DNA of 64,000 bases from NCBI GenBank assembly GCA_047495785.1, contig JBLDXI010000036.1, forward strand, positions 806,001 through 870,000, read 5' to 3'. The notes beneath the pieces are model-generated. The model did not search any database, was not told where the DNA came from, and worked only from the letters and a program-made list of their open reading frames with translations. Source of the stretch: Lepidodermella squamata (taxonomy: Eukaryota > Animalia > Gastrotricha). This document shows positions 11,531 through 46,611 of this stretch, one piece after another (within the stretch, counting starts at the first letter, position 1; each line of letters opens with the position of its first letter). A program made the position numbers and the translations under genes.

Positions 11531-11891
11531 TTAATGATCTGCTGGTCCGCAATATTTCACTTTTACAGCACTTTTGGCCGTCCGCCACCCCCATACGCCT
11601 TTGCCTCCACTTAGTCTGGTGCATTCCTCACTGGCCTCTTCCTCCGGTTGCCATTCTGCTTCGCGACCATGACCTTTGGGGAAGCAAACTGTGCTCGTCT
11701 TGCCTTTGATTGTGATTGTTTTCCACTCGCCAGGCCAGCCCTTTCCATCAAAGCATGCACCACCGCCAGCCACTGCAGCAACTAGATTAGCCTGTTAGAT
11801 AAAACTTGAAATCAATGGAGAATTATCTCTTGCATGCAAATTGTATCTTACGAATTACGAAAGGAGCAATGATTAAAACAAGCTTAGCCGT
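11531..11891 (-). pseudogene. MAKL-family peptide precursor A; start codon is ACG
   Basis: Exons 11891-11859 ((T)AKLVLIIAPF) and 11791-11531 (ANLVAVAGGGACFDGKGWPGEWKTITIKGKTSTVCFPKGHGREAEWQPEEEASEECTRLSGGKGVWGWRTAKSAVKVKYCGPADH*). Family 5'UTR (ctcgaaacat) and 3' hairpin present. Confidence 0.7.
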
Positions 11892-12258
11892 GATGTTTCG
11901 AGAGTTTTCCACGGTGGTGAAATACGAACTGGATCAACGAACTTTGGGGTTTCAGGCTCAAGATTGTATAGCTGAAAGTTCCGAGAGTGGTAAACATGAG
12001 CCCCAGGTCGGGCCTGTCCATGGGTAGCCTTTGAGGGATCGGAGACCACAGCCTAAGAATGACGCAAGAAGTTTGAAAATCCCTGTAACAGAGGCTTCTG
12101 TTTTTACTAAGAAGGTCGCGGAGCTTAAAAAACGATTTCTGATTTATTTCTAGTAATATTGTGACGGTAATAATTACTGGCATTACGATAGGTTATGGTG
12201 TAGTTGAATTCTGCTTTTCCTTAACTTGAATGTTTTTTCGTTGAGATGCCGTGTTCAA

Positions 12259-14244
12259 TCAGCATTCAGCAAGTTCATTGGCCCGAGTTGCACCGCGAGC
12301 CGTTAGCAGTTCGGCAACTTCGGCATGGCCACGGCAAATCGCCAGGTCGAGCTCTGATCTCCCCTCGCCATCAGTCACCTGAGCATTCGCACCGCGCTCC
12401 AACAACAGGCGTACGACCTCGACGCGCCCATTGTAGACCGCCATGGTCAACGCCGTCCAGCCATCCTTAGTCTTAACCTCCATGTTCGCGCCTTTGTCCA
12501 ACAACAGACGAACTAGCTCCAGTTTGTCATTAGCGGCTGCCTTCATCAAAGCCGTCCTGCCGTAGATATCCTGGACGCCAATGTTCGCCGCGCGCTCCAG
12601 TAACAGCTGTGTCGTCTCGGCGTACCCATAGTTGGCTGCCCACAACAACGCTGTCCAGCCTGTGGGATCCGTGGCCTCGATGTTGGCACCACGGTCCAGT
12701 AATAGGCGCACAACCTCGGCATGTTTGGCCGCCATAATCAGCACTGGGTGTCCATTGTACTCTGCCTTGGCTTCGATGCTCGCGTTGCGCTCGACCAGCA
12801 GTCGCGCTACTTCGACATGCCCCTGGTCGGCCGCCAGCATCAACGGCGTCAAGCCGCGGTCTTCCACGGCATCGAACTCCGCCCCGCGATCAGCGAGCAG
12901 CTGAATAATTTCCAGCCGTTGCTCTGGTTCGCGCGTCACACACTGAGTTAAGCGGTGAAGCAGCGTGCCGTTTCTAATCCAGAACGAAGGACAATATTGG
13001 TGTAGCCTGGGATCTCGCCAGTTCGGGTCGAAGTTGCCGTCGGTTGCCGCGTCGATGGCCGCCACAAGTCGCCGCGCCTCAGTCACGTTCAGGGCCTCGC
13101 CAACTGCCGCTGACAACTCCTCATAAAGCAGGCGTACCTGAGTAGATTGAAGAACAAGCAACAAGAAGTGAACGGCGGGGTTTGACGAATAAATGTTTGC
13201 CAACCAAGTTTTGGATCATGAGTTGTCTTTAAAGATGCGCTTAAAATTCAATTATATTGAGCTAAATTGTCAAATTTGTTGGAATTTCAAATTGAAATTT
13301 TCAAATTTTTATAATATAAATTTTCAAAAATCGAAATAATTAAATTTTAAATTTTTAAATTTTCAAAAATCGAAATAATTAAATTTTTAAATTCCAATTT
13401 CCGTAAATTGAGATAATTAAATTTTTTAATTTAAATTTTCAAGATTCGAGAATGTCAACTTTTTAATTTCAATTATTATGCTTACATATATGTCGACTAC
13501 AGCAGTTTGTTTTTCGGCCTTCGCCACTTCCAATGGCGTGAAGCCGTTTTTGAGTTTTGCGCTCTCGAAAGCACCTTTGATTTTTGCGTTCTTGTCAGCA
13601 CCTTTAGAGAGCAAAAAGAGAACGGCGTCGACGTTCCCCCGACCAGACGCATAGAACAATGGCGTGATGCCATCCTTAGCCGTAGCCTCGATGTTCGCCT
13701 TGTGCTCTAGCAACAAGCGTATAACGTCAACGTTTCCGCTGTAGGCCGCCTGATGCAACGCCGTGAAGCCATCTGTATTGGCATCGATGCTCGCATTGCG
13801 CCCCAGCAGCAGCCTCACTGCTTCGACGTGCCCATTCGCGGACGCCGACATCAACGCCGTCCAGCGTGAGTTACCTTCCTTCGCATTAACATCAGCACCA
13901 CGATCAATGTAAAGCCGAGCGATTTCTAGCCGCTGCTCAGCTTGCCGTGACGCTTCAGCACATTGCATCAAGCGGTGAAGTAGCGTGCCGTCTTGTAGGT
14001 AGAATGGATGTTCGCATGTGTTGTGTGAGTATGGATCGATCCAGTTGGCGTCGAACTGGCCGTTTGACGCTGTGTCGATCTCTTCCACAAGTCGCTTCAC
14101 TTCAGTCACGTTCAGAGTCTCCCCACTTGCGGTAGACAATTGCTCATAGAGCTCATGAATCTGTGTAGGGAGAAACAGATAAGTAGGATTCAGTGCGAGA
14201 TCTCGAGTTCTCCAGTTTGCGGGGAAATACCCAATGAAAATCAT
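12259..14244 (-). CDS. Ankyrin-repeat protein(s): two paralogous modules, either one spliced gene or two genes
   Basis: Repeated G-x-T-[PA]-L-x-x-A motifs. Both modules start LYE.LS...LNVTE..RLV..ID.A..G.FD.NW.DP...C...GTLLHRL.QC. A phase-0 donor after 13486 and acceptor before 13137 are compatible; 5' end uncertain. Confidence 0.75.
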
Positions 14245-14419
14245 GGTCCAGGAGATTGAATATTAAAATCGAATTTAAAATTTTGGAAAATTTTCAAATT
14301 TTGAAGTTCTGTGCAATTCAATTTCAGTTTCAGACTCTGTACAATTTAGTGTATCGAAACTTCGAATCGTATCGAAAATTTTCATTTTGATTATATGTCG
14401 ATCAATCGATTGGGAAATG

Positions 14420-17973: not shown

Positions 17974-17991
17974 TAATCTTCTGATGAGTAC

Positions 17992-18389: not shown

Positions 18390-18735
18390 TCACTTTCCTA
18401 TGGCCTCGCAAATCCTTTCCGTCCGACGTATAGGAAAAATGGAAATTTCGCGCGTTTTCCATTCACCTTTCTGGCCATACGCGTTCGTACATTCCTTGGG
18501 AGGAGCTGGTGTTTCCTGGTGATCGGCAGAATATTGCATGCATTCACCTCGCCTATTACGATAGACGCAATGACGGGCCGCTTCTTCCGGTTGCGATTCA
18601 CCTTCGCCAGCGTAAGCTGCTGCGACAACGAGAGCAGCCTGTTGATAAAGGAATGTGAAATCAGAGGGGAATTAATAAAAGATACTGCATATTCAAACTT
18701 ACGATAAAAGCGATCATTAAAACAAGCTTCGCCAT
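18390..18735 (-). CDS. MAKL-family peptide precursor B
   Basis: Exons 18735-18703, 18638-18390: MAKLVLMIAFI|AALVVAAAYAGEGESQPEEAARHCVYRNRRGECMQYSADHQETPAPPKECTNAYGQKGEWKTREISIFPIRRTERICEAIGK*. Canonical gtaagt...aacag intron. Confidence 0.85.
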
Positions 18736-19296
18736 AATATGCTTAAAGCTTAAAGTATAGTAAAGGAATTCAACTTAATATTGAAGTGTGAAAACAAATG
18801 AATGAAATAAGCTTCGACAGCCGATTCGAAAAGCACTCAGCCAGTAGATAGCCAGCTGCACATACACTTGATAGCCGTGTCGATGATCGACGCGTGACGT
18901 CTCGACTATTGTGCTGTCTAGACTGAACTAACATAATAGGTGGGGAGAAGGAAAAGTTGATGGTGGGGAAGAACGAGCCGACCCTATTATGTCATGTTTC
19001 GGTCGAACCTTTCATCAAATGATCAGATATACGCTGGAAGCTAGAATCACTACCAGCCACTATCTGCTAGCTACCTTCTCCCTATGGAGCCTGTGAAGTG
19101 GAAAGTCCACAAGGGGGCCATTTGGTCCTAAAAAAATTAGGCCCGAAAATTCCCCCTAGTTCGAGGATCCTACTTCGCGCACTGGGACCGATTGAACTGG
19201 TAGGGATCCTCGCCATCCCTCTCCGGGCAAACTACTTACTAATTGTCGTGACTTCATGACTTCATCGTGGGCACTGAATTACTGCTTTTTTGCTCT

Positions 19297-19605
19297 GCCG
19301 ATTTTCTCCGATAGAATTCACTGCTTTATTGCCCTGGATTTCGCAAAAGGTTACTGTGCGAACGTCAGGAAATCCGGTTGTAAAGATTGGCCTTGGCTTA
19401 GCGCTAAGCCAGTTCAATGACAGTTGTCCTTATCCAGGCCGAATGTTGTTACATGTCAATTTTGTCGATATTCCCGTGGATACTGATACTGTTTTATTTT
19501 GCAATTCTTTCCGCACATCCATTACGAGTTGAATTATTTTACTAAAACTACTCGAAACATATCATGTATCATGTCTTGGCGAAGCTTGATTTAATTATCG
19601 CGTTT
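19297..19605. pseudogene. MAKL-family fragments C: 3' coding end on minus (19297-19375), promoter and decayed exon 1 on plus (19385-19605)
   Basis: Minus strand reads GFPDVRTVTFCEIQG; plus strand has tggcttagcgctaagcca and ttggcgaagcttgatttaattatcgc. Confidence 0.65.
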
Positions 19606-20035
19606 CGGGTATTGGACCGTTTTCAGTAGAGTTTTGCCGCGTAAACCTGATCAATTTTTAAGTCTTTTTCAGTCTAGTTGATAGATAATACACTTCAATA
19701 AAATGAATTTCTCAGAATTGGAATTTCCGCCAGGTTGCTTCATTCTCCCTGCCGATCATGCACGGACTGCTTGTGAATATTGGCATTGGCTTAGCGCTAA
19801 GCCAGTTCAAACGAATTTTTTCATTCCCCAGGTCGAACTCCGTCCTAATTACGGGTTTAGTTAACCTGGCTAGATGTCACGTCAATGTTGTCGACATTCC
19901 CGGGGAAAGTATATTCAGCTGGCCATAGCTGGATGAGTGCTATTCGAAAGGCGACCCGAAGCTTATTTCATTCTTTTGTTTTCGCACTTCAATAACAATT
20001 TGAAATATTTTACTAAAACTACTCGAAACATTATC

Positions 20036-20335
20036 ATGGCAAAGCTTGGTTTTATTATCGCTGTTTTTGTAAGTTGAAATATGCTGGATCATTAATTCAT
20101 TCTAAACTAATATCTTCATCAACAGGCTGCGCTCGTAGTGGCAGCAGTTCACGCTGAATCGCAGCCGGAAGAAGCGTAGTAAATGCGTCAAGTGGTCGAG
20201 CTGAGGTATCTGCCTGCAATACTACTCCCCGTCCCTACCGCCACCGCAGCCGGCAACACCAGCTAGTCCCAAGGAATACCGACGAGAAAGGCGAGAAAGA
20301 TGTATTGAAAACGATACAACAAGGATTTCCTGATG
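20036..20335 (+). pseudogene. MAKL-family pseudogene D
   Basis: Exon 1 20036-20068 MAKLGFIIAVF; exon 2 from 20126 AALVVAAVHAESQPEEA*, then shifted frame KCVKWSS*GICLQYYSPSLPPPQP; truncated at ggatttcctgatg. Confidence 0.8.
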
Positions 20336-20822
20336 CATGAAGCTTGTTTTGGAATCACTTCTACTCATCAATAACAAGTGTGAACTTCAAACTGTTAAGG
20401 AATTCGCGGACAGGGGTTGGTCCCCCCGTCGTTACTGCAGCAGCTATTGCCAATATATACACTGCAAAACTGTCTGTAGAACTATTGCTGTATAAGTAAA
20501 GCATTGCTGGCCAATGTAAAAAATTCATACGAAAATCCGATTGAACCCAAATCATGTGTGACAAATTGATGAATTAGAGAAAGCATGAATCATATTATCC
20601 AAAAAACGTGAGGTATTCGCAGGATGTGGCTTCTCATCGCTTTTAAATCTCAAATGAATAGGGGCCATAATTAGATACTACGCCTGCTAAACACTGCAGA
20701 TTTTATTGAATACAGACAACGTGGTAGTTATACACATCAGCAGCAATGTCCAGATTCTCACGTGACATCGCCCTGCTTGCCGTAGCTTGCAGCAGCCATC
20801 TCATCACGCCCTGGTTGTCAGA

Positions 20823-21251
20823 TCATCGTTTCGCAGGCACACACTGACGAAAGCTGAAACCATTTGGGAGTTTGACCGTCTTCCATACGCCTTTACTGCC
20901 ATTTTTTCTCTTGCATTCCTCACGGGCCTCTTCTTCCGGTTGCGATTCTGCTTCGCGTGGCTTGGGAGGCTTGACGCACATTTTATGTTTGCCGCCATAT
21001 TTGTCTGTGTACGTTTTAACTACACCTTTCTCGCCTGCCTTGTTTTTACATTCTCCGCCATCTCCCGGCGCCGGTTGGGATTCAGCTTTGGTAGGTATGG
21101 CTGCTTTGCCGCCTTTGCCCGCTCTTACACCGTAAACTGCTGCGACAACGACAGCAGCCTATTAAGAAAGACATCAGTTGAGAATTATCAGAGATACTGC
21201 ATAGGTATTACAACTTACGATAACAGCGATCATTAAAACAAGCTTCGCCAT
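20823..21251 (-). CDS. MAKL-family peptide precursor E (two-peptide precursor)
   Basis: Exons 21251-21219, 21158-20823: MAKLVLMIAVI|AAVVVAAVYGVRAGKGGKAAIPTKAESQPAPGDGGECKNKAGEKGVVKTYTDKYGGKHKMCVKPPKPREAESQPEEEAREECKRKNGSKGVWKTVKLPNGFSFRQCVPAKR*. Confidence 0.85.
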
Positions 21252-22111
21252 GATATGCTTCAAGTAGGTATAGTAAAGTAATTCAACTTGTTATTTAAGT
21301 GCGAAAACAAAAGAATGAAATAAGCTTCGTTTTCCTGCCCGAACAGCACTCAGCCAGCTGCATATACACTCCCCGGGAATATCGACAAAATTAACGTGAC
21401 GTCAAGACTAGGTAGACTGAACCAACAGATAGGAAGGGGTTCTGGCTGGGGACGTTAGCTGAGTGCCTAGCCAATGTCAATCTACGCAAACGGCTCAGTC
21501 ATGCTCGGGTGAGGAGGATGACGCTGCCAGGAGGATTTTCCAATCCTGAGGAAGTTAATTTCCTTTAAGTGTATTACCTGTCCAATCCGGAGGTTCCTGG
21601 AGGAGCAGTATGTGTTAGGGAGCAAGAATTTCGGTAATAGAAAGTAACGATTCAATCGGTCCAAGTTCAGCCAATTCTGGAATCTCACCGCCCGCTTTGA
21701 TATCCAGTTGATTCAATGTAAAACATGCCTATTTCCCAAGCCTCACCTTTAAACCTATAAACATGTTAACGAATGGCTGGGAAGCCTCTGTGAAGACCCG
21801 GTGTAATATTTTTTTAAAAGGTGGATGAACGTCGGGATCGTATATAATCTCGTGGTGCTTTTGCCCTAAAGATTCGGGCGGAACTTGGTTGGGGTCTACT
21901 GGACCTTTGTTGGTTTCACGAGAAATCCTAGGATACAAATTTGAGAAGAAATTGAGAAGAAATTATACATAAGCTACTGCCAATTTTATTCATATCAGAG
22001 ACAAATAACCATGATAAAAAAATCAGCAGCTAAATGCAAATTGTTGTGTGACGTCGCCCTGCAAGCGCAAACTCGCAGCAGTCACCTCATCCTATGCCGT
22101 TAGCGCTGCAC

Positions 22112-22426
22112 TCAAACTTTCGCCATTGTTGGATAATATCCTGGCTCGACAACTAAGCACCACCGCTTCCCATTGACATCACCCCATTTGCCAGGTCGGC
22201 CGTCCCTCAAACAACCATCTTTTCCCATGCAGATCGTCTTGCCACGGTAAGCCGCCTGCTTACCTTTGCATTCTGTTACTTGGCCTGTTGCTGTAGGCTC
22301 ACTGATGGCTGCTGAAACTGCAACAAGAGCAACCTATAGAGAAAATTTGCGGCAATTATTTAATTAATGGATATATTGACAATTGAAACTAATGATCACT
22401 GCAATGATCAAACCGAGCCTTGCCAT
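22112..22426 (-). pseudogene. MAKL-family precursor F; canonical splice donor mutated
   Basis: MARLGLIIAVI followed by attagt instead of gtaagt; exon 2 22333-22112 is open: VALVAVSAAISEPTATGQVTECKGKQAAYRGKTICMGKDGCLRDGRPGKWGDVNGKRWCLVVEPGYYPTMAKV*. Confidence 0.7.
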
Positions 22427-22659: not shown

Positions 22660-25010
22660 GAGATGATGTGAAACGAAAGTCGTGCAGCATTCCGCAGTCC
22701 ATATCGCTGTATATCCCGCACCCAATTTACTGGCCGCTCGCACCTGGTGTCGTTCCCGGCGGGTCCTAACGGCTTATCGAGCACCAATTCCGAAATTTTC
22801 GCACTTGCTAATTTAATATAAACAATTTTCGATTGCGAAAAAAACGCGCGACGTGTGGACTCCAACGAAAACGGCAAGTTGCTTCCAAATTCGCGAATTT
22901 TTCTACGGTGGCACCTTGATGAACTCTTCAAGCGCTTTCACGAAGACAAAGGCCACCCCAAACGTGACGCTTTTTCGAAGAAGTTGAAGGAGCGCTACTT
23001 CTCTGTTCCACAAGGTAATATTTTTAAGGTGCGCAGAAATTTAGAGAAATTTAGTGCCCGTTTATTTTGATCTCATAGACCTCATAATGGATAAAATCAA
23101 GAAGTGTACTGTTTGCGCGCAAGGGCGAGCTTTGTCGAAGAAACCAGCTGGTAAACCGATCGTCGCTACTGGCATTTGGCAACGCTGCGGCATGGATCTA
23201 ATCGATATGACGTCTCATGAAGCTCAAGGCATGAAATGGATTTTCCACCTGAAAGATCACTTTTCCAAGTTCACCTACGCTGAAGCGATGCCAACGAAAG
23301 AGATGCATAATGTCGCCGAAAAGATGTTTCCACCTGTACTCGCCGTGTCGGATTCTTCATCACGACTGCGGAAAGGAATTCACAGGTTCAGCGGTCCGCG
23401 ATGTTCTGCGAGAGCATTTTCCTCAGGTGTTAACTGTGAAGAGCCGACCTCGACACCCCGAGTCAAATGGCTTGATTGAACGGGCGAATGCCACCCTGGA
23501 ACAAGCAATAATGTCAAAAGTGAATGCTGGCGATACCGATTGGCCTAGTTATTTACCTCAGCTTGTTTATGATATCAACAACCGCCACTCTCGAACAATC
23601 AATGATTCGCCGTCGCATCATCCGTGTTCTTTGCTCGGACAATGCTTTGGGAAGGTGAGGAAACAGTCACGGAAACCTTGAAAAACATCCCGCTGGATTG
23701 CGAAGATTGGGTCCCTGATGAATCCGATGAAAGTGTTAAAGATGTGATGATGTCCTTGAATAACCTCGCATTATCTCGAAGCTCGACCGAAATTCAGCAC
23801 GAAACCGATGACGGTAACTTGACTGAAGAAGATACCGCCACGGAGACTGAAGGGGAAACTGGCAACGAGACAGAGTTTGAAACTGGAACGGAAACTGGAA
23901 ATGAAGGCGACGTTGAAACTGAAGGTGAAGCGGAGGGTGATGCTGGTACTGGGGGTGAAACTGACCTTGGCACTGAAAACGATTTCTGCCCGACTGGCGA
24001 GAGCGATTTTGATTATTCGGAGCCGATAAAACAATCACTACAAAATCCCGTCAATGACTGCGTCACTGTTTCGCTCCGTCCGAAGTGTCTGGATGAATCA
24101 AAATGAAGGTTGTCAAATCGGGGAAGACGTTACCAATCTTGAATTCCCTAATGCTGGTTCTGTTGATGACCATATGCCCGGTTACAAGAGTGATTTCCTA
24201 TCTCCGCTGGATGCTGGAATACAATTCCGAGACAGCAGAGGACTTTGGGTGCTTTTTGACGAAGATCGACAAGAAGTGGCCGTTGGTGAATTCGTCGAGT
24301 TGCGAAATGGGATTTTCAAGATAGTAGAAATCGATGGTTCGCGCTGTCAGATTGGCGACTCCCGAGGCGTGCTAGACGGTTGGTTTCTACTCGACGAGGT
24401 ATTTTAATAATAATTGTTGCGGTCGATCCACTCTAATATAATACTATTTTTCAGTTGCATTTTTGCGAAGCCCCGCAGAACTTTCGAGTGCCGCTTGGCA
24501 AGTCAGTTGCTGTAACCACGGCGTTCCAGCATCAAAGCGGATTCGAAAAAAAGCGGCCGAAAAAGGATAATGACGCCGAAACCAAACCAGGCGACGACCT
24601 CAAGAAACCGAGACTAGCGGCAAGAAAAACACTGTGCAAATGTACGAAGGGCTGCGGGAAGGGTCCATGCTTTTGCAAACAAGCAGGGCTCAAGTGCGCA
24701 ACTAAATGCCACCCGGGCGTTGCCTGTATTAATCGCTAATCGCTGTATTAATCGCTTCTTTGACTGATCATTGACACTGTTTCAAAAAATTTCAGTTTCC
24801 AGTTTTCGATTCACCATGCTTTAATTGATAGGTGTACTAATAAAGGATGTTAAATGTTGCGTGTTCATCTAGCGGAAAGCAATTCAATATTTCGATAGTA
24901 TTTGAATAGGCCGCGGAATGCGCGCAATTGCAATATATTCAATATTTAGCGGAACGCGTGATCCGCTAGCGGAACACGCTTTCCGCTAAAACGCGTGTTG
25001 CGCTACGACA
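22660..25010 (+). mobile_element. Ginger2/TDD-like DNA transposon with retroviral-type integrase; frameshifted, left end not found
   Basis: H-x4-H...CTVC zinc finger, MDLIDM, KDHFSKF, HHDCGKEF, HPESNGLIERAN; introns 23015-23078 and 24399-24454; C-terminal CKCTKGC...CFC...CATKCH. Ends ...cgctacgACA at 25010 with subterminal tagcgga/tccgcta inverted repeats. No RT or LTR seen. Confidence 0.7.
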
Positions 25011-25676: not shown

Positions 25677-26030
25677 TTACGGCTTTTTGGCCTGGATTTC
25701 GCAATACGTTACTGTGCGAACATCAGGAAATCCTTGTTGGACCGTTTTCAATACACCTTTCTCGCCTTTCTCGTTCGTACATGCCGTGGGAGCCGCTGGT
25801 GCTGCCGGTTGCGGTGGCGGTGGTGGTGGCAAGTTGAACTGCCATTGCTCGCACAAACCCGATCTCGTCCGCTTGATGCATACGGGTTGTTGACGGGCCG
25901 CTTCTTCCGCTTCGGCATTGACTGCTGCAACAGCGAGAGCAGCCTGTTGATGAAGAAATTAGTGAAAGATAAATTGATGATACAGCGTAGGGCAACTTAC
26001 AACAGCGATAATTAAACCAAGCTTCGCCAT
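25677..26030 (-). CDS. MAKL-family peptide precursor G (same protein as H and I; upstream promoter truncated)
   Basis: Exons 26030-26001, 25943-25677. Confidence 0.8.
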
Positions 26031-27518
26031 GAGATATTGTGCTTCGAGTAGTTTTAGCAAGATAATTCAACTTGTTATTGAAGTGTGAAAACGATAGAAT
26101 GAAATAAGCTTCGTTACGCTTTTCGAAAAGCACTCGTCGAGTTGCGAAATGGGATTTTCAAGATAGTAGAAATCGATGGTTCGCGCTGTCAGATTGGCGA
26201 CTCCCGAGGCGTGCTAGACGGTTGGTTTCTACTCGACGAGGTATTTTAATAATAATTGTTGCGGTCGATCCACTCTAATATAATACTATTTTTCAGTTGC
26301 ATTTTTGCGAAGCCCCGCAGAACTTTCGAGTGCCGCTTGGCAAGTCAGTTGCTGTAACCACGGCGTTCCAGCATCAAAGCGGATTCGAAAAAAAGCGGCC
26401 GAAAAAGGATAATGACGCCGAAACCAAACCAGGCGACGACCTCAAGAAACCGAGACTAGCGGCAAGAAAAACACTGTGCAAATGTACGAAGGGCTGCGGG
26501 AAGGGTCCATGCTTTTGCAAACAAGCAGGGCTCAAGTGCGCAACTAAATGCCACCCGGGCGTTGCCTGTATTAATCGCTAATCGCTGTATTAATCGCTTC
26601 TTTGACTGATCATTGACACTGTTTCAAAAAATTTCAGTTTCCAGTTTTCGATTCACCATGCTTTAATTGATAGGTGTACTAATAAAGGATGTTAAATGTT
26701 GCGTGTTCATCTAGCGGAAAGCAATTCAATATTTCGATAGTATTTGAATAGGCCGCGGAATGCGCGCAATTGCAATATATTCAATATTTAGCGGAACGCG
26801 TGATCCGCTAGCGGAACACGCTTTCCGCTAAAACGCGTGTTGCGCTACGACATATACACAACTCGAACGCCATCTCATCAGAGAGATTTCATCAGTCATG
26901 GACCGTGTTATTGTAGGATTCAGGTCACAAATTAGCTAAATACGAAGCTACATCATCATGAGCCCACAATTGCGAGTAATGAAACATAGTCCTCCAACTA
27001 TGATTAGCAATTTTCAACTGACAATAGGAATCAGCGATGAACTTGAAAATCTACCATGTCTACCATGACACACAACCGGTTCTCATTCCTCACCAAATGG
27101 TACTTATCGGAGGATTACTTGGTCATTCTGAAAAATTATTGCTCCTTGGGTTCTCTCCTACTACACCTTTCCTGTCCTAAATCTGAATTTGTCCTGCAAT
27201 TACATGTTGTTTTCCTTAAAATTGTCAAGCTGCCCTCTCTTGGGCGTATGAGCTTCAAAATAAATAAATAAATAAATTTAAATTTCTTTTTCCGATCTGA
27301 CAAAGTCAAATAAAACGTGCGATAGCCATCAGCCCGAGAGACTTCGTACGCACTGCGAGTTAAACAAAGGAATGTATTCCAGCAGGTTTTATTAATTCAT
27401 TATAGACAAGCGCAAAATGGGTACATATCAGCTATGCAGATGGTTGTGTGACATCGCCCTGCTTGCAACGCAGCAGTCACCTCATCCCTCCATTTTGGCC
27501 GATTTTCTCCGACAGAAA

Positions 27519-29621: not shown

Positions 29622-29653
29622 TTTCTGTCGGAGAAAATCGGCCAAAATGGAGG

Positions 29654-31613: not shown

Positions 31614-32307
31614 TTCAACCTTTTTCAGTTCACAAGCGTAAAATTAATTGTACAGAATGCAATAGAAATCTTAATCTGTATTTACATGCGTAGTTGAAGC
31701 GTGGGCTTGTTTTCAATTCACAGTTTCATTTTACAGCAGGCTTTGCATAAGCATCGTAGAATCGATCGATGCGCTATAGGCGGAGTAATTACAGCGGCTT
31801 GAGAGGCTCTCGAAAGTTCCTTGCATTTCCAAGAGTGTCTTCAGCTCAAGATCAAAAGCCAGTGTCATTTTACTCCAAACTAACTCCTAACTGACCAAAA
31901 GGATGGTCAGCTTATTTACCAAAGAGCTATATGCATTAAGGAACGGCATAGTGAATTATCTCCCCTCTCATCTCGAGTCCTCAGGTTCGATCAAATAACA
32001 CGGTCGTGTTTTTAATAAAACTAACAGCTGTTCACGCAATAACCGCAAAAATATGCGCCATTTCGGTATGACTATACCGCGTTGTAATACTATGCTTACG
32101 AATTGATCCTTTTATTTACGATACCAGTGGCGTAGTTTTTATGAGACTCACGGCGTTCCTATCAAACTTAGCGGAGCTTACTCATATTCTCCCCCTTTTC
32201 CCTAATTCTCGCAGTGCTTTAAATATTTAATAATCTTTATTAATTTGGATTTATCCTTGAATTTAGTACTTGATTTTAGCAACTAATGTCTTTCATGAAT
32301 TAGAAAA

Positions 32308-35300
32308 ATGGCCATCCGAATATTTTCGTCTCGAGTACCGGGCAATAGCAGCGTGAGTTTGACAGCCAATTTTCTGAAAATTTACCTTATCATGTTTTGT
32401 ATTCAGATTAGACATCAGCAGCGGCATTTATTTGACATTCTTCAGACGAAGAAAATCGCCTACGATGAGATCGATATCACAGATCCGTGGAATGAAGAAT
32501 GGAAGCTGTTCATGCTGGAAAACTGCCCTCCTGACCCGGGACGAAACCGCCCGATCCCGCCTCAAATTTTCTCCGGAGATGCTTACTGCGGGGTAATTTT
32601 AAATTGGTGACATTTTTCAAGCATAATTTACCTTTTCCCCCCGTACCAACGATTTCTAAGTAACTTCACGTAATTTATGTTTTTGAAGTAGGCTGTGAAC
32701 AAATTTGTGACAAATTAATTTTCGTTTTTTTTAATTATTGACTTGATTCGATTTTTTTAATTTTTGGTACGAAAAGTGTCTGACGTTTCCTGATTTACAT
32801 GCTGAATTTTTTTTTAATTTTTTTTCTGCCTTTTTGGTACTTGGTACCCCTCAAAACAATTAGGTGCATGAACTGAGTAAGACAAGTCATAACACTTTCT
32901 TAGCGGACATTTCGATAGTGTTAATCGATTTTTCAGTCGCTTGTTTTGTTCAGGAGGATTAATTTTGTCTATTTTTTCCAGAATTATGAAGACTTTGCGA
33001 TAGCTCTGGAAAATGAGCAGTTGTGGACCTTCCTTCGCTTACATGCCCCAATCGACGATGAGATGGCACGATGGAAGGTATGAAGCGAATCCAGCTGCTA
33101 TCAGTCTTTTCATATCATCTTATGTTTCTTTAGGCTTCCTGGAGGCATCGGAATGTCCCTTTGAAAAAGCCCGTGCCTGCACTGCAACCCTTAAAATCTG
33201 AAAATACTGAAAGTCAAAGCAAGCCATTGGCCGTAAAATCGTTCAATGAACAGGAAAACCCTGATGGCTTCAAGAAGGCTGCAACTAAAAGCTCTCCAGT
33301 TAAACAAATGGTTCAGTCACTGGAGAGTCAGCTGCCAAAAGACCCTGAGAAAATGCCTTATATCGACGATGTGATCTCGAAACAGAAATGTTTGCCTGTC
33401 GAGGTGAAAACTATCAGCATCTCACAGGCGATTCAACCTTCATTCCGTGATTCAGAGGACGCAGCTCCGGACCCTAAATCCAGGACAGAAGTAGAAATAA
33501 CAGAGCCATCTCTTAACCTCGAGAATCGTCCATACCAGAAGGGAGAACTTGTTTTGGAAACATCAAAGCCTGAATCAGAGGAAATCATCCCTAATCCTGA
33601 GAATGAGCTAGAATTGCCTGTTTCCTCACCTCAGCCTCCCTTAGCGCCCATCGAGGACCTCTCAGTCGATGAAATGTGTGCTTCGCCGCCTCCTGATTCA
33701 AAGGAACATCATGAAGAATTCACTTTTAAACATCGGGAGAAGGCGGAATTTTCCGCGCTGTCGCCCACTCCCCCTATTGCCACATTAGATGATCTGGCTT
33801 TGGGCATGCCTCCGGAGCCCGTTGAGGATGTTACTGCGGCTTCGGTCGAAGATCAAGAAGTTATCGATGATGAGTTGGAAAGATTGCAGTTAGAGGATAA
33901 GGTAGAGATGGAGAATCTGCCGAAGGAAGATGGCTCTGATGCAGCTCAAATCAAAGATCAAGTGGAACTCATTGGAGAACAAGAATCTGGCGCCCAGGTT
34001 ATTGATTCGCAGATTCAAGGCGAATTGGTTGAATCCACTGAAGAAAAACTTGTGGGAATGAGACCACAGTCGCTTGATGCGCGCCAAATCGAACCGGAAG
34101 ATCAGGAAGAAGAGCAATTTTTCGAAGTCGCTGAAGAGAGGAGACAGGTTATTGACGCAGCTGAGCCGGGAGCTGACTTCATTACAGAAGGGATCTCTGA
34201 CGTTCCTAATCTAGAGACTAGAGCAATCATAACGCAAGAGGAATCGGCAAAAGCGGAGGCGAAACCTTCAGAGACAATTCTTCCCGTGGAGGTTCAATCC
34301 TTGGAAGAATCGGATGCATTTCATGAATCCCAAGAGACGATTCCAACTTCAGACGAAGCAATGAAGTTTGCCTCTGCAGTGCTAGAATCTAAAAGACCAG
34401 AGATGCTTGGCCAAGATGAAGGTGCCGATACTCCACTGAAAGTTGAGACTGCAGTTCCAACCCAAGCGTCGAATATTACCCTTGCAGAGCAGCCTAGTAA
34501 CACAGCCGTTGATGAAGGAATGCCAGAATCCATTCAAAAAGTTGACGAATCACTTGAAAGTCCTGCTGGAGGCGAGGAAGACATCGTAGTGGTTGTGGAA
34601 GAAGTCAAGGGAGACCGTCTTTCAAAGGTTGAAACTACTAAACTTGGGGACATAGCTACATCGGCAATGGATTCTGATGGAACAGCTAATCATCGTGAGG
34701 ATCAAATTCAGCCTGGATTACAGGCTTTGGAAGTGGACTTGAACCAAACTTCTTCTGTGAATGAGGAAATCGCTGCTGAAGCGTTTTCCGAACAACCATT
34801 ATCGGAGATCCTTGAGCAAAATCTAGACGTTTCTTCAGAACAATCTCGAGAAATTGAGGGAGCTTTAGAAGGGCCCGAAAATCTTGATATCGATCCCTCA
34901 GAAATCAGAAAGGATGACATACCTCAGACGGATTTGAATTCGACTACCAACATGGTTTCAGTAACGGAGGATCAAACGATGCCTAGTGACATCAAGGCTG
35001 AAGAAGATCTTGACATATCAGCTTCATCTGTTGAATTGGAGGACGATAAATCTCAGCAACTGAAGCCAACTCAGCCTCACCAGCTAGAAACCCTGATTAG
35101 CGAGAATGAATCTAAGGACAAGGAACAGCCTTTTAGCCAAGACAAATCAATCGCCCTTGAAGCTGCCGAGAACTCAGTTCAATTTGATGCACAAGCCAGT
35201 GCTGAGTCGATTGGAGAAATCATTCCACTACTGGTGACTGACCTTCGTAAAGCCGATAATACTCAATCAGCTCTGGATGATGAAGATTTGACCAGAGTCG

Positions 35301-38300
35301 AAAAATCCTCCTCAGAAAAACCTGAAAGCATTGCGAGTGAAGAGTCATTTCACAGTGTTACAGGCGAGAAAGCTGAGGAGGGGCAGCTGGAGGAAATTGA
35401 TAAGATTCCCCAGCCTGCTTATCAAAATTTCGAATACGACAATGGTCCAATGGCATCAAAGGAAGAGTTGCAACCAGATCAGGGATTTCAAAGTCTTAAA
35501 GATTCTGTGGAACAAGCTGAAGAATTAGCAACATCTACGCCCCTTTTGTCTCCTTCAATTGAGGAAGAAAAATCAATAACGGAATTAGCTGATCAATCAG
35601 CCAAGGAAGTTGGAAACGAAAGCGCTACGGCCAAAGTAGCCGATGAGATATTGGCAGAAAGTGACAGTCAACCTGACCCTGTAATTCAGACTAATACCTC
35701 TGAAGCGCTGGCTTTAGATCAACACCTTAGCAGTGCTATCCCGGCGGAGGTTGAGCGGTCAGGCGGAGGAAGTACAGCTGTATCTGACGCGATTCCTATC
35801 GAGAACTCTGAGGAAAGATCGGCCGGAGAGGAAGTCGTCGCGGAGCAGTTCATGGCCAAGCTGGAAACGGCTAGCTCAATCACGAGCCCAATGAGTGATG
35901 TCTCTGCTACCTCCATGACCGACTCAAAATATGAAAAATCTCAAGCTGACCCTGAGGCTGGGGAGACAAAGGGCCTGAATCCGGAGAATGTTGCCAATGT
36001 TCAGGACGAATCCGAAGCTAAAAAAGGTCCAGAATACGGTCTCAAAGCTGCATTTGAGTCCTCAGTTGAAGATGGAGCTGTAGAAACTTCACCGGAGCAA
36101 GATTCAGATAAAACTGTCACCCCTGGGATTACCCCGAGTGCATCCGAAGATCATACAGAAGGTACCGGTGAAGTGCTGAATCCCGAGGCAATTGAAGACG
36201 AGATTGAAGCGAGGTCAAGCGATGTTATTCCAAACACGGAAGTCGCTGTCGAAACGGCAATGAAAAGCGACGATTCCTTGGATAACTTGGACCAAGTGAT
36301 GAAGGATGAGGAGGTCATCCCAGAATCGGCCATTGTCGAGTCTTTATCCGACCCTAAGTCAATCACAGAACCTAATGAAAAAAGCCAACTCAATCCTGAT
36401 TCAGCAGTGATGCAACCCGAGAGCTTGGTTTCAACTACAAGCGGAAAGGTTTCTATGTTAATCCTCGAGAATGCGGAAGAATCAATTAAGGAACCCTTGC
36501 AAGACGATTCAGAGCTCGTCGATTCCTTGACCCAAGAAACAGCCACGGAATTAGATAGGAAAGTGGAAAAAGCCCCGGAGATCTGTGCAGCTGTGATTGA
36601 TACTCCTGAAGATATAACAGCGGCACAGGATGAACATTTACCTGAAAAGACCTTAGTTAGAGGTGATGAGCCTTTTGATGAGCCCATATCGGCTGAATCA
36701 ACGGAGCTCAAAGTCGAATCTTTCGTTGGAATTCCAGCGAAAGATGAAGGTCGACTCGAAAACGAGTTGGGTTCAACACTCGAAGCTGGCGAAACGGATA
36801 CAGATCTTCCAGAGCTGGATAACCAGGTTGGAAATGCTGAGGAGACTATTCAACCTGATCTCAACGCTAGTCAAAGTGGAGACAAGTTTATGCTGGATTC
36901 GGAAATCCCCAAGCTAGCAGCCGAGGAACCAATGATAGAAGCCAGCAAAAGTCAAGTGGGCGAGACCGAAGGGCTATCATCTCAAGCTGAAGCTTTGGAG
37001 GCTTCTGAATCTAGTGAGAAATGTGAGGATTCTGGGCTTATTGCATCAAATGAGGAAACCTCCGGACTAATCGCGGAAGAATCTGGCCTTTCGCAAGTTG
37101 AACCTCAATTTGAAGAAAAAGACTCAAGAAAAGTTGCCGCTGATGATCAGCATGATCAGCCGGAGAAACAATTCAAAGATCAAACTGAAACAGGCGTGGA
37201 GGCGACGGAATTCGACCTAAACCGTGATTCTTTCTCGGAGCATATCACAGCTGAGATAACTTCCGATCAGTCAGTGTCGGAGGAAATCCATGTAGAGAGG
37301 CACGATCCTTTCCCAGAGCGGACTGAGACAATTGTTGGAGTTCATGAAGGGCCTGACAACGTGGATAGCGATCTTTCAGAAGTTGACTTGGTTGAAGCAC
37401 CTCAGACAAATTTGAATCCCACGGCTACCACCCTCCAAGAAGCCCATGAAGATGAGATTGTTGCTGAAGATTCCAACACTGTTAAAGATAAGATCGAAGA
37501 GCAAGATCTACCGGCTTCTTCTTCTGCTGTTGAGGAAATCGGCATTTCAAGTCTGTCTTCTGAGAAATCTCAAACTGAAGCTTCAGAGGCTCCGATTTCT
37601 CCTACTGGCCGAAGCTCCGTCGAAGAGGCAGTTGGTATCCCGATCAAAACAGAAGTGATCTCTGATGAGCTAACGGACGAGTCTGAGCTGCTTGATATCG
37701 CCGAACTATCCAAGAAAATTCCTAGCTCTGGAACGTCTAGTGAACAATGGAAAGATGACCATGAATCAGCTTCATCTGCGGAAAATCCCACTGAGCTAAC
37801 TGAAACGGGTAAAATATTTGTTTTATTATAATAAACCAAAGTAATATATATATTTTCTCTCAGATGTTGTCACTGAGTCGACCGTGGCCAATTCTGCCGA
37901 AGAAAATAGGGATCAAGTGGGAAAGCAAGAGCTTATTGATGAGACGCCACCTGTTGTTGAAGCACATGCAAGTTTGACAGAGGATACGCTTGAAGAGCAA
38001 ACGGCCCAGTTGAGCTTAGATCAAGAAAAAGAGGCTGATATAGCTGAACAGCTAGTAAGCGAGATTCCCTCTGATCAATCCGGCCTTGCTATTGCCGAGG
38101 AGCTAAATAAGATCGAACAACCGCACGAAATGTCGTTTGAAGATGAACCGGGGACTGATTCAAAGGGTGACGCCACTCGTGGTGTTGATACTAAAATGGA
38201 AGAAGATCTTGATCTATCTCTGGAAGAAAAGATGGTCGAACGCCCCGGGCCAGTCGATAAGACCTCTTCTTTCGACAAGATGGAAGAAATCACCGGTCGC

Positions 38301-41300
38301 ACTGAAGTTTCAGCTGAAATGGAACTAGCTGATAGTCATCAAGCTGCTATAGATGCTGCAACTGAAGACACGACTTCTGCAACTCAGCTTAAAGAAGCGG
38401 ATGTCTCAGATGAAGCAATCATCCAAGAAACATCCGGTACATCTGATATAGTTCATAAAGTAGACGAGGCCGCGCAATCGTTGCTTGAAATCTCATCAAC
38501 AGCTGATGAGCCAACGGCCGTCACTTCTCCTAGCGAAGGTCCAAGCCAAGGCGAATCTGCAGAAATAATTCAAACCGATGTGATTCCAACCACGCAAGCT
38601 GATCCTACTTCTGCAGTAGCAGAGATTCTCGTGGAAAATAAGTTTGACGATGATGTTACCTCGAATCTCACAGATGCTAGCGAAAACGAACCGGTGGGAA
38701 ATGCTCGAGCAACCAATCAAGCTGAAGCTGGAAAAGCGGAGGAGGATACCTCAAAAGGATCGGTTGATGATAGGCTCGAAGAGCAAACAGCAAAGTTGGA
38801 CTTCGCTCACGAGGAAGATCTTGAGAAGACCGAACAGCCGGTAGCTGAGCTTTCTTCTCATCAAGCTCCATCTCAAGAGAAGACTGATAACAACAAAGAT
38901 CCTGTCGTTCCGACTTTGCCCGAGGAAGCTGCAGTTGATGCTGAGCTGTCTGTTCCAGTCGATTTTGCTTCGAAGGGCGGTAGCAATCTTGATGAAGATA
39001 CTAAAATTGAGGAAAATGTTGATTTACCTCTCGAAGAAATGCTGGTTGAACGCCCGGGGCCGGTCGAAGAAACCTCTTCTCACGGCAAGATGGATGAAGT
39101 TACTGGTCAAATCGAAGTTGCAGCTCAAGATGAGTCAGCGGATAGCTATCAAGCAACCTTGGATGCTACAACTGGAACCTTGGTGGAAGAAGCTGCTGCC
39201 TCAGATGAAGCAATTATCCAAGAACTATCAGATTCTCCTGTAGCTGAGGACGAAATTGCTGCTGTAGAAGATGAGACGGCGCAACCATCAACAGCTGAAA
39301 AACCTATTGGAGAACCAGGCCAAGGTGAATCTGCGGAAATAATTCAAACGGAATTTCACGACATTCGAACCACGCAAGAGGCTCCTGCTTCTACAATTAT
39401 GGAAATTCCAGCGGGGAATGAATTTGCAGATGATGTTCCCCCGAATCCCACAGATGCCTGCGTAAACGAGCCGGTGGTAGAACCTCAATTAACGAGCCTG
39501 GTCGAAGCTCGAGAAGTGGAGGATGTTCTGGGCACTGAAGCTATCCGACCTCCAGAATTCTATCAAGAGATGAATAGTTCTGAGCCCAAAGATTCCTCAA
39601 TTGCCGAATTTCCCGATCTCAGCGGAAATGTAATTCCTTCAGATTCTCAAGCAAAAATCAGCATTCAGTCAGAAAATGTAGAAGAAATCTCAATCACGGA
39701 TGACCAACTGCCTGTAGATGACACGCAGCCGGTGATTGAAGAGCCAACCATCATTCAGTCTCAAGCAGTTCCTCTGGGGAATGACGATTGCACCCTGCCT
39801 CCTCGTTCAGTTGAAGTTGAAGACACAGTAGATATTCCAGAACAACAGTCGAGCCACGAGGATTCCCCCTTGGAGCTTGCAACAATCGATTCGGGAGAAA
39901 TTGCAGAGCCCAAGAAGTCATCGGATGAGTCAGAAATTACCGGTCAAGAATCGTTCCCCGACAATTCCGGGAAAGAACTGGACAGTGAATCAACAATCCG
40001 TGATTCTGATTCTGTTGAGAAGGTAGATCTACAAGCTAAACAGGGAATCTTGCCTCTCCTGCAAACATCATCTGATCTGGATGTTGGCGGATCGACAAAT
40101 AAATCCGACGCACTCGATGCTGTGTTGTCTGAAATTACGACAAAAGAAGAAGCAAAAGCGGCGCCTGGAGAAGAATCGGAGACACTCGATGCCCCAGCGA
40201 AATCGGAGGAGAATTTAAAAATCGAAGAAATGAAACCTGATGAGATGGGGGTAAAGGCTACAGACCTAGCCTCAGATGATAATGCCCAGAAATTTGAGGC
40301 TGAAATCGGAGAGCTGAAGGTGGCGACTCAGGATCATCTCGACGAAACACTCTCATCACCGAGTCGGGCAGAAATCAAAGCTGAAATCGCCGAGACTTAT
40401 TCCGCCCTGATGGAAGAGAAGATGATGGAGGCTCCTCTTGAGAAAGGCGATGAAGTCGATGTCTCGAGTCTCGAACGACAAATACCGGCCGATTATTCAA
40501 TCAATGAGCCTCAAAGAACTCCAAATGCTGCTCAAGACTCAGCCGAAATAATTCAAGAAGAACTGCCTATTGATGAGCCATTTGACTCTGCGGATATCCC
40601 GAATCCTGGCGGAGCTCCAGTAGAATTCTTCGATGATGAAGATGATCTACCTCAAGCTAGGGCGAGCTTCAGTGATGATTTCTTTGATCAACCTGATGGC
40701 AATCTTCAGCCGAACCCTGAGCAATGGCAAGAGCCGGACGGTTCATCCACAACTGAGTTGGTTTCAATGCAAGCGTTATCGCCTTCAACAGACGGACCTC
40801 TGGAGGGAGATGAAGATGGCGTCCCAGAGTCGGCCGGCGAGGATGATTATTCACGGGCTTCGGTAAGGGTCTTCGAGAGATCAGAGACGTCTTCTCCTGA
40901 AAAACTCGATGAAGCGGATCCCATACAAGAAAAAGTCGTTACATCAGCCGAGGCTGGGGAAGAGATCAATCCTCCACCCCCCGATCACAGTGAGGTTCAA
41001 AAGGGATTCGAGGATAATACTGCCCCGGAAAAGGAGGATTCCCCTAGAAATCTCAAGACCTATTCGACGGTTTTGAAACAGGCCAGTGGAATCCCGCGTC
41101 CAACTTCCCCGATCTCCCAGCCTATCCCGATCAGCCCACCAATGCAATCAAGGCTGGCGAGTAACATTCCAAGGCCAGCTTCAAGGCCGATGTCTCCAGA
41201 ATTAGGTCAAAAGGTTCCTCCTATTCAAACTGAACCTCAATCTCCTTCTGATTTTCGAGAGAAGGAGGTTGAGCGAACCTCGGAGATGCTGGTCGAAAAA

Positions 41301-41504
41301 AGCCAGTCGAAAGTCCAGCTCGACGTACCTGGTCTGAAGGTTGATGATCCTGAAAAGAAAAGCCTCGCTAGCTCGAACGAGAGCGTGAATTCAGCCGATG
41401 CCTACTTCAGTGCTGCGGAGGAAGATGACTCGTCGAAGCCGTCAAGCAAGCCAAGTCTAATTCCTGTATTGAAACCTGATACTAAGGACAGTGATAAAAA
41501 ATGA
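32308..41504 (+). CDS. SH3BGR: SH3BGR-family protein with giant acidic disordered extension (~2880 aa, 5 exons)
   Basis: Exons 32308-32352, 32407-32592, 32982-33077, 33134-37808, 37864-41504 splice in frame (8643 nt). N-terminal MAIRIFSS...QQRHLFDILQTKKIAYDEIDI...IPPQIFSGDAYCGNYEDF...LWTFLRL matches the SH3BGR thioredoxin-like domain. AATAAA ~41653. Confidence 0.8.
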
Positions 41505-44338: not shown

Positions 44339-44877
44339 CATAGAACATGTTGAGACTGTTGAGATTTAATTTGATTCACAAATGATTGATCTACTAAGAT
44401 GTTGCATTCAGCTCGACTTATTTCTTATAGCAGACCATTAGCCCGAATCTAGCCGAACCTTACTCGAGAGGTCCAGGCAAAAAAACCGAAAAACACCACA
44501 GATCAGATGAACTCGGGGCTGAAAATATACCTAATCGTACCCCACGATTCTTCCGGCAGTTTTCCGAGTTCACTCTAGCATTGTAATAAAGAACGAGGTG
44601 GCGCGCAGCGTCGGTTCGATAAAGTATTAGCACCAAGGCTACTTCCACCAAAGTTGCAATCAACTTTCGTTATCACCTATAGAGGGGAAATATATAGGAG
44701 AACTCATTAGAGACGTCACCTCCCAAAACCTTCATCGTCAAAGGACGTGAGATACAAACTATCTGGCAAATTAAATTGAAAAGCAGCAGCTAAACCGATT
44801 TTTCTGACTTAATGACACGGAACGGGGCAAGATTATTCCTTGACAGCAAAAATAAGGACATTTTATTAAGAGGAGTT

Positions 44878-45890
44878 ATGCAAATTCAAACATTTTTTCC
44901 CATCACTGGTTTCTCAGGAATTTCGGCGATTTTCTACAATGAAACTTCCACTTCCGAATCAGTGGAAAACATGAGCTATCCCATGCCTAAATACGTAATT
45001 GGGCCAACAATGCCTCGAATCGCTAAGTCCTTACCATGTTAGCGTCAGTAAACTATGGAGGCGAATTCCCGATAGGCCCACTTTGATTTCAATCAATTTC
45101 AGTGCAGTGATGTTGCTGCCATCTCGAAATTCATGTACGAAATCAACAACAATGACGGTGCTTACAATAGACTTCCTTTCTTAATCGTTTCCCAATGTGT
45201 AACTTTAATTAATCAGTTAATCAGTTAATCAGTTAATCACTTCGGCCCTAACCATATATATTACAATTTCGTTGGGGCTAGCTCAGAAGTTAGCTCAGAA
45301 GAATTTATTCAATCTGGCTAACATTACTTCGTTGCTCAGATCACTCCAGGGCAATGATCGTCACTTTTAACTGATGATCGAGGCCGTTTCAGCGAGGTAT
45401 TCACCTTAGGAATTCCACCGGAGCAAGTCTACATTGCACTGCTCGACCTCATGTCAGCTTTTCATTGGCATAAATTCGCGATTTTATCAGAAATAAACTC
45501 CCATTTCAACGAAATCGATAGATTCATCCCGGTGTTGCTGGCCAAGCGTGAAATGAACCTGATTTGGCTTGGGAAGGTCACTTACAAATCGGCTGATACC
45601 GATGAAATGCTGGCCGCGTTTCAAGAAACGGCTCGCTATGACCTATGACCCGAGAATCGTGCTGATACACAGCGATTCCCCTGTTTCTATAGGTTGTTGG
45701 CTCTAATGTCTCACGGTTCGGATTTGCCGCGCCTAATCGAGTTCTTATTCAAACTTCATGTAGCTACTTCGACCCTCTTACAGCTGAAATTCCTGAATAT
45801 GTCCGAAGCTGGCGCTCTGTCGAAATGTTGATCGACGTTGCGAGAAGTTCGTCTACTTCGGCGATGGAATTATTAAGGATATGAAGGGAG
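44878..45890 (+). pseudogene. Decayed Venus-flytrap/ANF-receptor-domain gene
   Basis: Fragments VIGP, FQCSDVAAISKF, VYIALLDLMSAFHWHKFAILSE with stops and frameshifts; (TTAATCAG)n at ~45209-45238. Confidence 0.5.
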
Positions 45891-46360
45891 ATGAGGTACT
45901 AGATTCGGGTGGATTGAGCAGGTCGGAATTGTTCGAAAAACTATCGAAAAAAGTGGGGGATGCAGACCGCAATTTTGCCTTCAACATTTGGCCCGAAAAT
46001 ACCCCCTAGTTCGAGGATCCTACTTTTATCGTTGCTATAACAGAAGGCGCAGTAATCATTCAAGGGCAAGCATGCCAATCTGAGAACAATGCATCGGGTT
46101 ATTACGAATGGGTCTGCGGCTTTCTATGCTTGGTGCCTTTTTCTACGTCTATCCTTGGTGCATTTTTGCGCTTACTCTTGTTTATCGCTTTCATCATCTC
46201 TCTAATGTTTTTCGCCATTCAATGCCATATTTGGAGAAAGAATCGCCGATTAAACAATCGAGTATTTACCCAGGTGACGAAGGAATGAAAGGGTCTTATC
46301 GCAGTGGGAAGCCAACTATTATCCTTTCATTTCTTCATCTTTAATTTTCATTTTCACTTC

Positions 46361-46611
46361 ATGGCAAAACTGGCTGTACTTCTTGTCGCTGCTCTGGTAA
46401 GACTTGGCTAACTTTTCTTTTCAGACGCACCTGAATGGCGTAATTTTCTCTACAGGTAGCTAGTTTTCTAGTGATGGGCGCCGCTAGCTTCAGTGCTAGC
46501 GATGCTGCAGCTTGGATTGGCAAGGAATGCGTCAGATACAGTGGCAGGTCGGGTGTGTTTCGATACAACTACAGTATCAATAAGCTTGAGTGCGTCGCTA
46601 GAAGCGGATGA
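46361..46611 (+). CDS. MAKL-family peptide precursor J (divergent, single module)
   Basis: Exons 46361-46396, 46456-46611: MAKLAVLLVAAL|VASFLVMGAASFSASDAAAWIGKECVRYSGRSGVFRYNYSINKLECVARSG*; AATAAA ~46722. Confidence 0.8.

Follow-up and report, generated by a model that had tools for sequence, protein, structure and literature searches.

Tandem two-cysteine loop genes in Lepidodermella squamata: a candidate family of secreted defence-type peptides

A 64,000-nucleotide stretch of the genome of the gastrotrich Lepidodermella squamata (contig JBLDXI010000036.1 of assembly GCA_047495785.1, positions 806,001 to 870,000 of the forward strand; hereafter the window) contains, within 35 kb, ten copies (A to J) of a small two-exon gene predicted to encode secreted, mostly cationic peptides. 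The common element of these genes is a loop bounded by two cysteines, C-x3/4-G-x2-G-x-W/V/L/F...C, which matches no known family in the searches made. The cluster is best read as a new family of secreted defence-type peptides. It lies in animal-like eukaryotic DNA that is not human and is gene-dense, with very short introns.

A six-frame regular-expression scan of the window returned exactly 10 loops with eight distinct sequences (G, H and I being the same), whereas 30 shuffles of the window gave a mean of 0.67 matches and a maximum of three. All ten loops listed in an earlier reading of the DNA made from its letters alone (the sequence-only reading) were recovered at the positions given there. 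The ten copies are paralogues, not independent events. A hidden Markov model (HMM) of the module, run over the six-frame translation of the window, found no further copy, apart from weak traces in D and C, both of which are decayed. The invariant columns of the module alignment are C, G, G and C, with one further column restricted to W, V, L or F, and the spacing between the cysteines ranges from 17 to 26 residues, in both respects as first described. Modules are 19-28 amino acids long, have net charges of +1 to +7 and isoelectric points of 8.0-10.6, and adjoin acidic spacers. The description of the scaffold as a two-cysteine module also holds, but B, G and F possess, at the position of a first module, an extra and shorter upstream cysteine pair (C-x8-C in B and G, C-x12-C in F). 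This short pair looks like a truncated first module, so that most mature regions contain four cysteines rather than two.

The unit repeated across the family is approximately 650 bp long, and one gene model with consistent splice sites fits every copy. Exon 1 (27-36 nucleotides) comprises ATG and 8-11 further codons which, read from the DNA, encode MAKL or MARL followed by hydrophobic residues. A phase-0 intron of 57-67 nucleotides follows a GTAAGT-type donor, and exon 2 starts with about ten further hydrophobic codons (for example, AAVVVAAV). Because hydrophobic codons lie on both sides of the intron, exon 1 and the start of exon 2 are jointly read as a single signal peptide split by the intron. 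The rest of exon 2 encodes, in order, an acidic or proline-rich spacer and one or two cysteine loops: two full loops separated by a conserved acidic linker in A and E, and a single loop in J. Every loop is therefore located in the last exon, 3' of the split signal peptide and the spacer, in agreement with its earlier designation as the mature part of the product. Predicted precursors are about 65-120 residues long.

Conservation among the copies extends beyond the exons, to about 170 nucleotides of 5' flank and about 150 nucleotides of 3' flank. The promoter region shared by some copies includes a conserved TGACGTCAC-like element of the cAMP-response element (CRE)/bZIP type (Table 1). A TAAATAA/TCAATAA element is found about 46-51 nucleotides 5' of the ATG in D, E, G, H and I, gene E having a TATA-like element at -46. 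Downstream, a poly(A) signal (AATAAA or ATTAAA) occurs 111-133 nucleotides past the stop codon in each of the seven copies that look intact (B, E, F, G, H, I, J).

Predicted fold and divergence of the copies

Exon 2 products served as queries for both folding and database searches. AlphaFold2 was run on module E2 with the eight-module alignment, and on the whole exon 2 product of gene E. Module E2 was modelled with a mean predicted local distance difference test (pLDDT) score of 86.9 and strands at residues 3-5, 11-18 and 24-30. In the whole exon 2 model the same three-strand pattern was predicted for both modules (pLDDT 85-89), with strands at residues 36-38, 44-51 and 57-62 in E1 and 81-83, 89-96 and 102-108 in E2, while the N-terminal spacer and the linker were disordered. 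The two modules are 39% identical. The predicted topology is beta1, G-x2-G loop, beta2, turn, beta3, in which beta2 begins at the conserved hydrophobic residue, G-x2-G forms the connection into it, and the two cysteines, in beta1 and beta3, would form a disulfide. The models of E1 and E2, two of the eight distinct loops, thus converge on one topology, and the small beta-sheet scaffold proposed from the sequence alone is what is predicted for both.

In comparisons of B, E, F and G, identity is 64-70% in the 5' flank, in exon 1 with the intron, in the signal part of exon 2 and in the 3' flank, whereas in the pro-plus-mature coding region it is 50.1%, which is the level of shuffled sequence (48.7%). 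The invariant C, G, G and C of the loop are encoded by varying synonymous codons (TGC/TGT; GGC/GGA/GGT), and the other module columns have a mean pairwise identity of 18.5%. Thus, the loop is conserved at the protein level. The ratio of nonsynonymous to synonymous substitution rates (dN/dS), from rough Nei-Gojobori estimates that are indicative only and leave out a misaligned comparison of the small loops of B and G, is about 0.8-1.0 in the modules, whereas the signal part has a value of 0.25 and the acidic linker of E and A one of 0.44. This linker (20916-20957 and 11624-11665, both on the minus strand) has a dS of 0.14, compared with about 0.9 in the modules that flank it (0.90 in an adjoining module), which suggests gene conversion or mosaic evolution.

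Signs of gene birth and death are evident in pseudogene D, fragment C, the start-less gene A and the 98-100% identical triplication of G, H and I. The overall pattern has the signature of a scaffold under purifying selection with fast-changing surfaces, within a cluster that evolves by birth and death. The cluster is a compact example of this process, in which the coding part has diverged beyond its own intron and flanks.

No known Pfam domain was matched by the six distinct exon 2 products (E <= 10; the few matches listed all fell below curated cut-offs, the best, with an E value of 0.03, being to unrelated domains of unknown function), as expected for the scaffold originally proposed. Neither the module profile nor exon 2 of E gave a relevant match when searched against PDB sequences. 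Foldseek searches against PDB gave best E values of 1.5 for the module model and 0.27 for the model of the whole exon 2 of E; matches to fibronectin type I and fibrinogen alpha-C were not significant. Nothing was found in a word-index protein search, for which exon 2 of E and the exon 2 alignment were the queries, or in scans of JGI metagenomes with a linker peptide pattern and an exon 1 DNA pattern. A literature string search for motif hexapeptides yielded unrelated matches only. Bowman-Birk-like and thanatin-like readings of the loops were rejected, there being no motif match. Rfam and tRNA scans of the window were empty.

An exhaustive HMMER search of 1.84 billion representative proteins with the exon 2 profile gave 0 matches. 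In a leave-one-out control, left-out paralogues from the cluster itself scored only 4-35 bits (3.8 for F, 9.8 for J), while an estimated 41 bits or so are needed for E <= 0.001 in a library of this size. Thus, the searches rule out close relatives in the collection but not distant ones.

Proposed role and alternatives

It is moderately probable that the loop forms the structural core in a tandem, lineage-restricted family of small secreted peptides with a defence-type extracellular role. Each loop would fold into a three-stranded antiparallel mini-sheet whose first strand holds the first cysteine. G-x2-G would provide a tight connection to strand 2, starting at the conserved W, V, L or F, and a Gly/Pro/Asn turn would lead to strand 3, from which the second cysteine may bond back to strand 1 and staple the sheet. 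Only the residues of this scaffold stay constant, whereas those on the exposed faces evolve at the neutral rate or faster, and the family gains and loses copies. The products may then act extracellularly on variable non-self targets, in an antimicrobial or other defence role. Until the precursor is processed, for example at the R-EAE sites of A and E, the charge of the cationic loops may be offset by the acidic spacers. The sequence directly shows a gene family of secretory design whose scaffold is conserved as protein, and the fold is predicted; the disulfide, processing, expression and function are what we infer.

Several points weigh against a defence role or the proposed fold. Flanking dibasic sites are missing from most modules; thus, release of a peptide of about 25 residues is not evident, and the products may be proteins of 30-100 residues. 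The net charge of module G is only +1. The folded loops are two of the eight distinct ones, and their AlphaFold models were built on shallow alignments of 6-8 paralogues. The dN/dS comparisons cover 10-33 codons each and have saturated synonymous sites.

The products could instead be endogenous signalling peptides (hormone-, neuropeptide- or pheromone-like), in which case cleavage of the precursors would yield disulfide-looped ligands of receptors in the same animal. The R-EAE junctions between the modules of A and E would fit such cleavage, and the Gly-Lys end of B and the Gly end of J are common in amidated peptides. A neighbouring gene, K, has the same signal cassette on a classic multi-copy precursor: its mature part consists of three tandem 20-amino-acid repeats with RR-EAEA junctions and has no cysteine loop. 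However, ligands that bind receptors are normally conserved, and here paralogues are no more alike in their loop faces than random sequence, the number of copies is changing, pseudogenes are present, and cleavage sites do not flank most modules. A signalling role is therefore considered unlikely.

Gene K also bears on the signal cassette itself. Over the 190 nucleotides around exon 1 and the intron, from 60 nucleotides upstream of the ATG to 130 nucleotides past it, K and J are 59.8% identical, versus 51.6 +/- 1.9% for shuffled sequence. This similarity hints that one secretory cassette may be used for different mature peptides.

A smaller chance is given to the loops being parts of small secreted proteins with a structural or binding role (matrix, adhesive, biomineral or lectin-like), with tandem mini-sheets serving as binding modules that are not released. 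The scarcity of processing sites, the two-module layout of A and E with a flexible linker, the Lys/Gly-rich loops and the weak, non-significant Foldseek similarity to pairs of fibronectin type I modules are compatible with this role. The very small size of the products argues the other way, the extreme sequence turnover and several decayed copies would be unusual for structural components, and no repeat expansion was seen within the genes; a structural role is accordingly improbable.

It is very improbable that the loops are non-functional, that is, chance reading frames within a DNA repeat. The entire 650-bp unit does recur, its non-coding flanks are better conserved than its coding part, three copies are broken and no database relative was found. 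However, seven copies retain the reading frame together with splice sites, signal peptide and poly(A) signal, and four scaffold residues are held invariant through synonymous changes amid otherwise randomised DNA, which is not expected of a neutral repeat. Membership of a described family (arenicin/BRICHOS, anti-LPS factor, barrettides or fibronectin type I), to which the general likeness to single-disulfide cationic hairpins and the barrettide layout of MA.K-hydrophobic signal, leader and cysteine core (PMC8713285) might point, has a minimal probability given that there is no Pfam or PDB sequence match, no Foldseek match below E = 0.27 and no BRICHOS domain, and that the barrettide cysteine pattern and acidic character differ.

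The defence-type reading has a wider form, possible but tentative, in which the loop is a new mini-fold (a three-stranded sheet with one disulfide and G-x2-G as its connector) founding a class of animal host-defence peptides, and one signal-exon/intron cassette launches unrelated mature peptides, those of the cysteine-loop genes and that of K. If so, the cluster would represent a compact natural system of peptide innovation in a poorly sampled animal lineage. With its natural one- and two-module forms and its eight variants of a single framework, it would provide a template set for peptide engineering, and the loop would serve as an innate-defence marker in an animal lineage barely covered by public protein collections.

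Individual copies and neighbouring genes

Seven copies (B, E, F, G, H, I and J) look intact and three (A, C and D) look decayed (Table 1). Gene A has ACG at the position of the start codon and no in-frame upstream ATG; exon 2 keeps an open frame, and the 300 nucleotides past its stop contain no poly(A) signal. Gene A is probably decayed. Near copy C, a fragment at 19452-19601 on the plus strand resembles the 5' flank of the family. Gene D retains exon 1 and the intron intact and has in-frame stops in exon 2 past the signal part; the module HMM detects a trace of its module (11 bits) in another frame, with the first cysteine missing.

Table 1. Positions of the loop genes, their modules, gene K and promoter elements in the window
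Feature	Position	Strand	Structure	Remarks
Gene A	11531-11891	-	Exon-1-like 11859-11891; intron 11792-11858; exon 2 11531-11791	Two modules
Module A1	11684-11755	-	24 amino acids	Net charge +2
Module A2	11549-11623	-	25 amino acids	Net charge +6
Gene B	18390-18735	-	Exon 1 18703-18735; 64-nt intron; exon 2 18390-18638	C-x8-C loop and one module
Module B	18408-18491	-	28 amino acids	Net charge +3
Copy C	19265-19429	-	Fragment: last part of a G-type module only	From translation and weak HMM trace
Gene D	20036-20340	+		G-type pseudogene
Gene E	20823-21251	-	Exon 1 21219-21251; 60-nt intron 21159-21218; exon 2 20823-21158	Two modules, acidic linker
Module E1	20976-21050	-	25 amino acids	Net charge +5
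Module E2	20841-20915	-	25 amino acids	Net charge +7
Gene F	22112-22426	-	Exon 1 22400-22426 (probable); exon 2 22112-22333	C-x12-C loop and shortest module
Module F	22157-22213	-	19 amino acids; C-x3-G variant	Net charge +3
Gene G	25677-26030	-	Exon 1 26001-26030; 57-nt intron; exon 2 25677-25943	Module 25701-25781
Gene H	27519-27872	-	Same as G	Module 27543-27623
Gene I	29268-29621	+	Inverted copy of G/H	Module 29517-29597
Gene J	46361-46611	+	Exon 1 46361-46396; 59-nt intron; exon 2 46456-46611	Module 46528-46593
Gene K	54886-55208	-	33-nt exon 1; 57-nt phase-0 intron; exon 2 starting AVVAVVA	
TGACGTCAC-like element (B)	18895-18905			About 150-166 nt 5' of ATG
TGACGTCAC-like element (D)	19870-19880			About 150-166 nt 5' of ATG
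TGACGTCAC-like element (E)	21400-21410			At -153; about 150-166 nt 5' of ATG

Gene B combines an ATG, a GTAAGT donor, a CAG acceptor and phase 0 with a poly(A) signal at +133 and flanks conserved with E and G; the poly(A) signal of gene E is at +116. Gene F is without the usual GTAAGT donor and, judging from its sequence, would splice at a GTGATC donor in phase 0; it has a poly(A) signal at +122, and its flanks are 62-64% identical to those of B, E and G, compared with a baseline of 51.6%. Gene J, the most divergent member, has the usual two-exon architecture and a poly(A) signal at +111, and its DNA identity to B-G is at background level.

The mature part of gene G comprises the C-x8-C loop, a proline-rich spacer and a single module. 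G and H belong to a tandem duplication of 1842 bp with 100% identity, and I to an inverted repeat that is 98% identical. Along with G, H and I, the recent segmental duplications copied several further reading frames (23054-24739, 26134-26581 and 30583-31641) that are 100% identical between copies: one that appears integrase-like by eye (no Pfam match), an acidic frame of 160-180 amino acids and a cysteine-rich frame of 94 amino acids.

Close to gene K, at about 53900-54225 on the minus strand, a second MAKLASA... start is preceded by the 5' leader of gene K. It has no canonical donor and a short possible exon 2, and is probably a remnant.

The window also encodes two class C receptors (ANF_receptor and 7tm_3 domains), two ankyrin-repeat proteins, and EGF and PAN domains. 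Exact look-ups of three of its proteins gave no match, so that the source genome is absent from the protein collection. The ankyrin-repeat genes are adjacent (12259-14244, minus strand) and have in common a distinctive N-terminal region of about 90 residues that is not ankyrin. An NRF6-type (nose-resistant-to-fluoxetine) acyltransferase occupies three adjacent frames with tiny introns between them (7222-9589, minus strand). Its homologues in molluscs, brachiopods, spiders and echinoderms are 30-34% identical to it, which points to an animal about equally distant from the first three, and proteins of ENA metagenome contigs are 39-47% identical; the nearest of these metagenome relatives has the same order of an NRF-domain frame and then an acyltransferase frame, and the gene is tandemly duplicated there. 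At 32308-41504 (plus strand), an SH3BGR-domain exon is followed by two uninterrupted, extremely acidic frames of 1556 and 1206 codons without a Pfam match. An intact frame of 631 codons at 48424-50319 (plus strand), which matches no Pfam family and has no exact counterpart in the protein collection, is possibly a transposase-like gene.

Relation to known peptide classes

Arenicin-type/BRICHOS peptides are also cationic, have one near-terminal disulfide that closes a beta ring, and derive from precursors that have both a signal peptide and an acidic pro-region. However, arenicin-type precursors reach about 200 residues or more and include a BRICHOS domain and a single C-terminal peptide, whereas those of the loop family have about 65-120 residues and one or two loops, with a G-x2-G-x-W motif of their own and a predicted third strand. 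For comparison with the two-stranded, single-disulfide hairpin of arenicin-type peptides, the AlphaFold prediction is a hairpin with a short third strand that bears the first cysteine; the disulfide of the loop is putative. No BRICHOS domain was found in the six distinct exon 2 products (Pfam, E <= 10), the precursors being too short for one, and no similarity to arenicin-like mature peptides was found in the PDB profile and sequence searches or in the profile search of 1.84 billion proteins. Thus, the loop family cannot be filed under arenicin/BRICHOS, and the likeness to arenicins drawn by the sequence-only reading, which stopped short of homology, is an analogy only.

Other single-disulfide beta-hairpin antimicrobial peptides, including thanatin, lactoferricin B, ranacyclins and bactenecin, resemble the loops in their length of about 20-28 residues, positive charge, Gly/Pro/Asn turn and cysteines in the strands. 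They have one strand pair and are usually Arg-rich, whereas the loop family has three predicted strands and is Lys-rich. The beta-hairpin antimicrobial class is described as cationic with a length of 11-25 amino acids, compared with modules of 19-28 amino acids with charges of +1 to +7 and putative mature ends, and a 2026 review put the number of sequence families of disulfide-cyclised beta-hairpin antimicrobial peptides at only 27 (PMC13001179).

Barrettides of the sponge Geodia barretti are likewise encoded by an animal genome and have an MA.K-hydrophobic signal, a leader, a disulfide beta-hairpin core and introns, and they too form a small, species-restricted family (PMC8713285). However, the barrettide core of 31 residues (C-x-C ... 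C-x4-C) is acidic, its four cysteines form a ladder (I-IV, II-III), the peptides are antifouling and not antimicrobial, and they have no motif in common with the loop family, in which cysteine spacing and charge differ (PMC8713285). The loop family thus cannot be filed under barrettides, since both the cysteine pattern and the charge are different.

In its mode of evolution the cluster resembles the peptide superfamilies of cone snails, frogs and mussels, which combine a conserved signal with a hypervariable mature part. The loop genes have a conserved signal and conserved non-coding parts, a hypervariable mature part on a fixed cysteine framework, and a tandem arrangement that includes pseudogenes and copies of recent origin. 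In cone-snail toxins, frog dermaseptins and mussel myticins, the signal and the non-coding parts are likewise conserved and the mature part evolves fast on a fixed cysteine framework, in tandem clusters with pseudogenes. The likeness is one of evolutionary mode only, as their sequences and folds are unrelated to those of the loop family. It extends to the use of one signal cassette for unrelated mature peptides, represented here by gene K.

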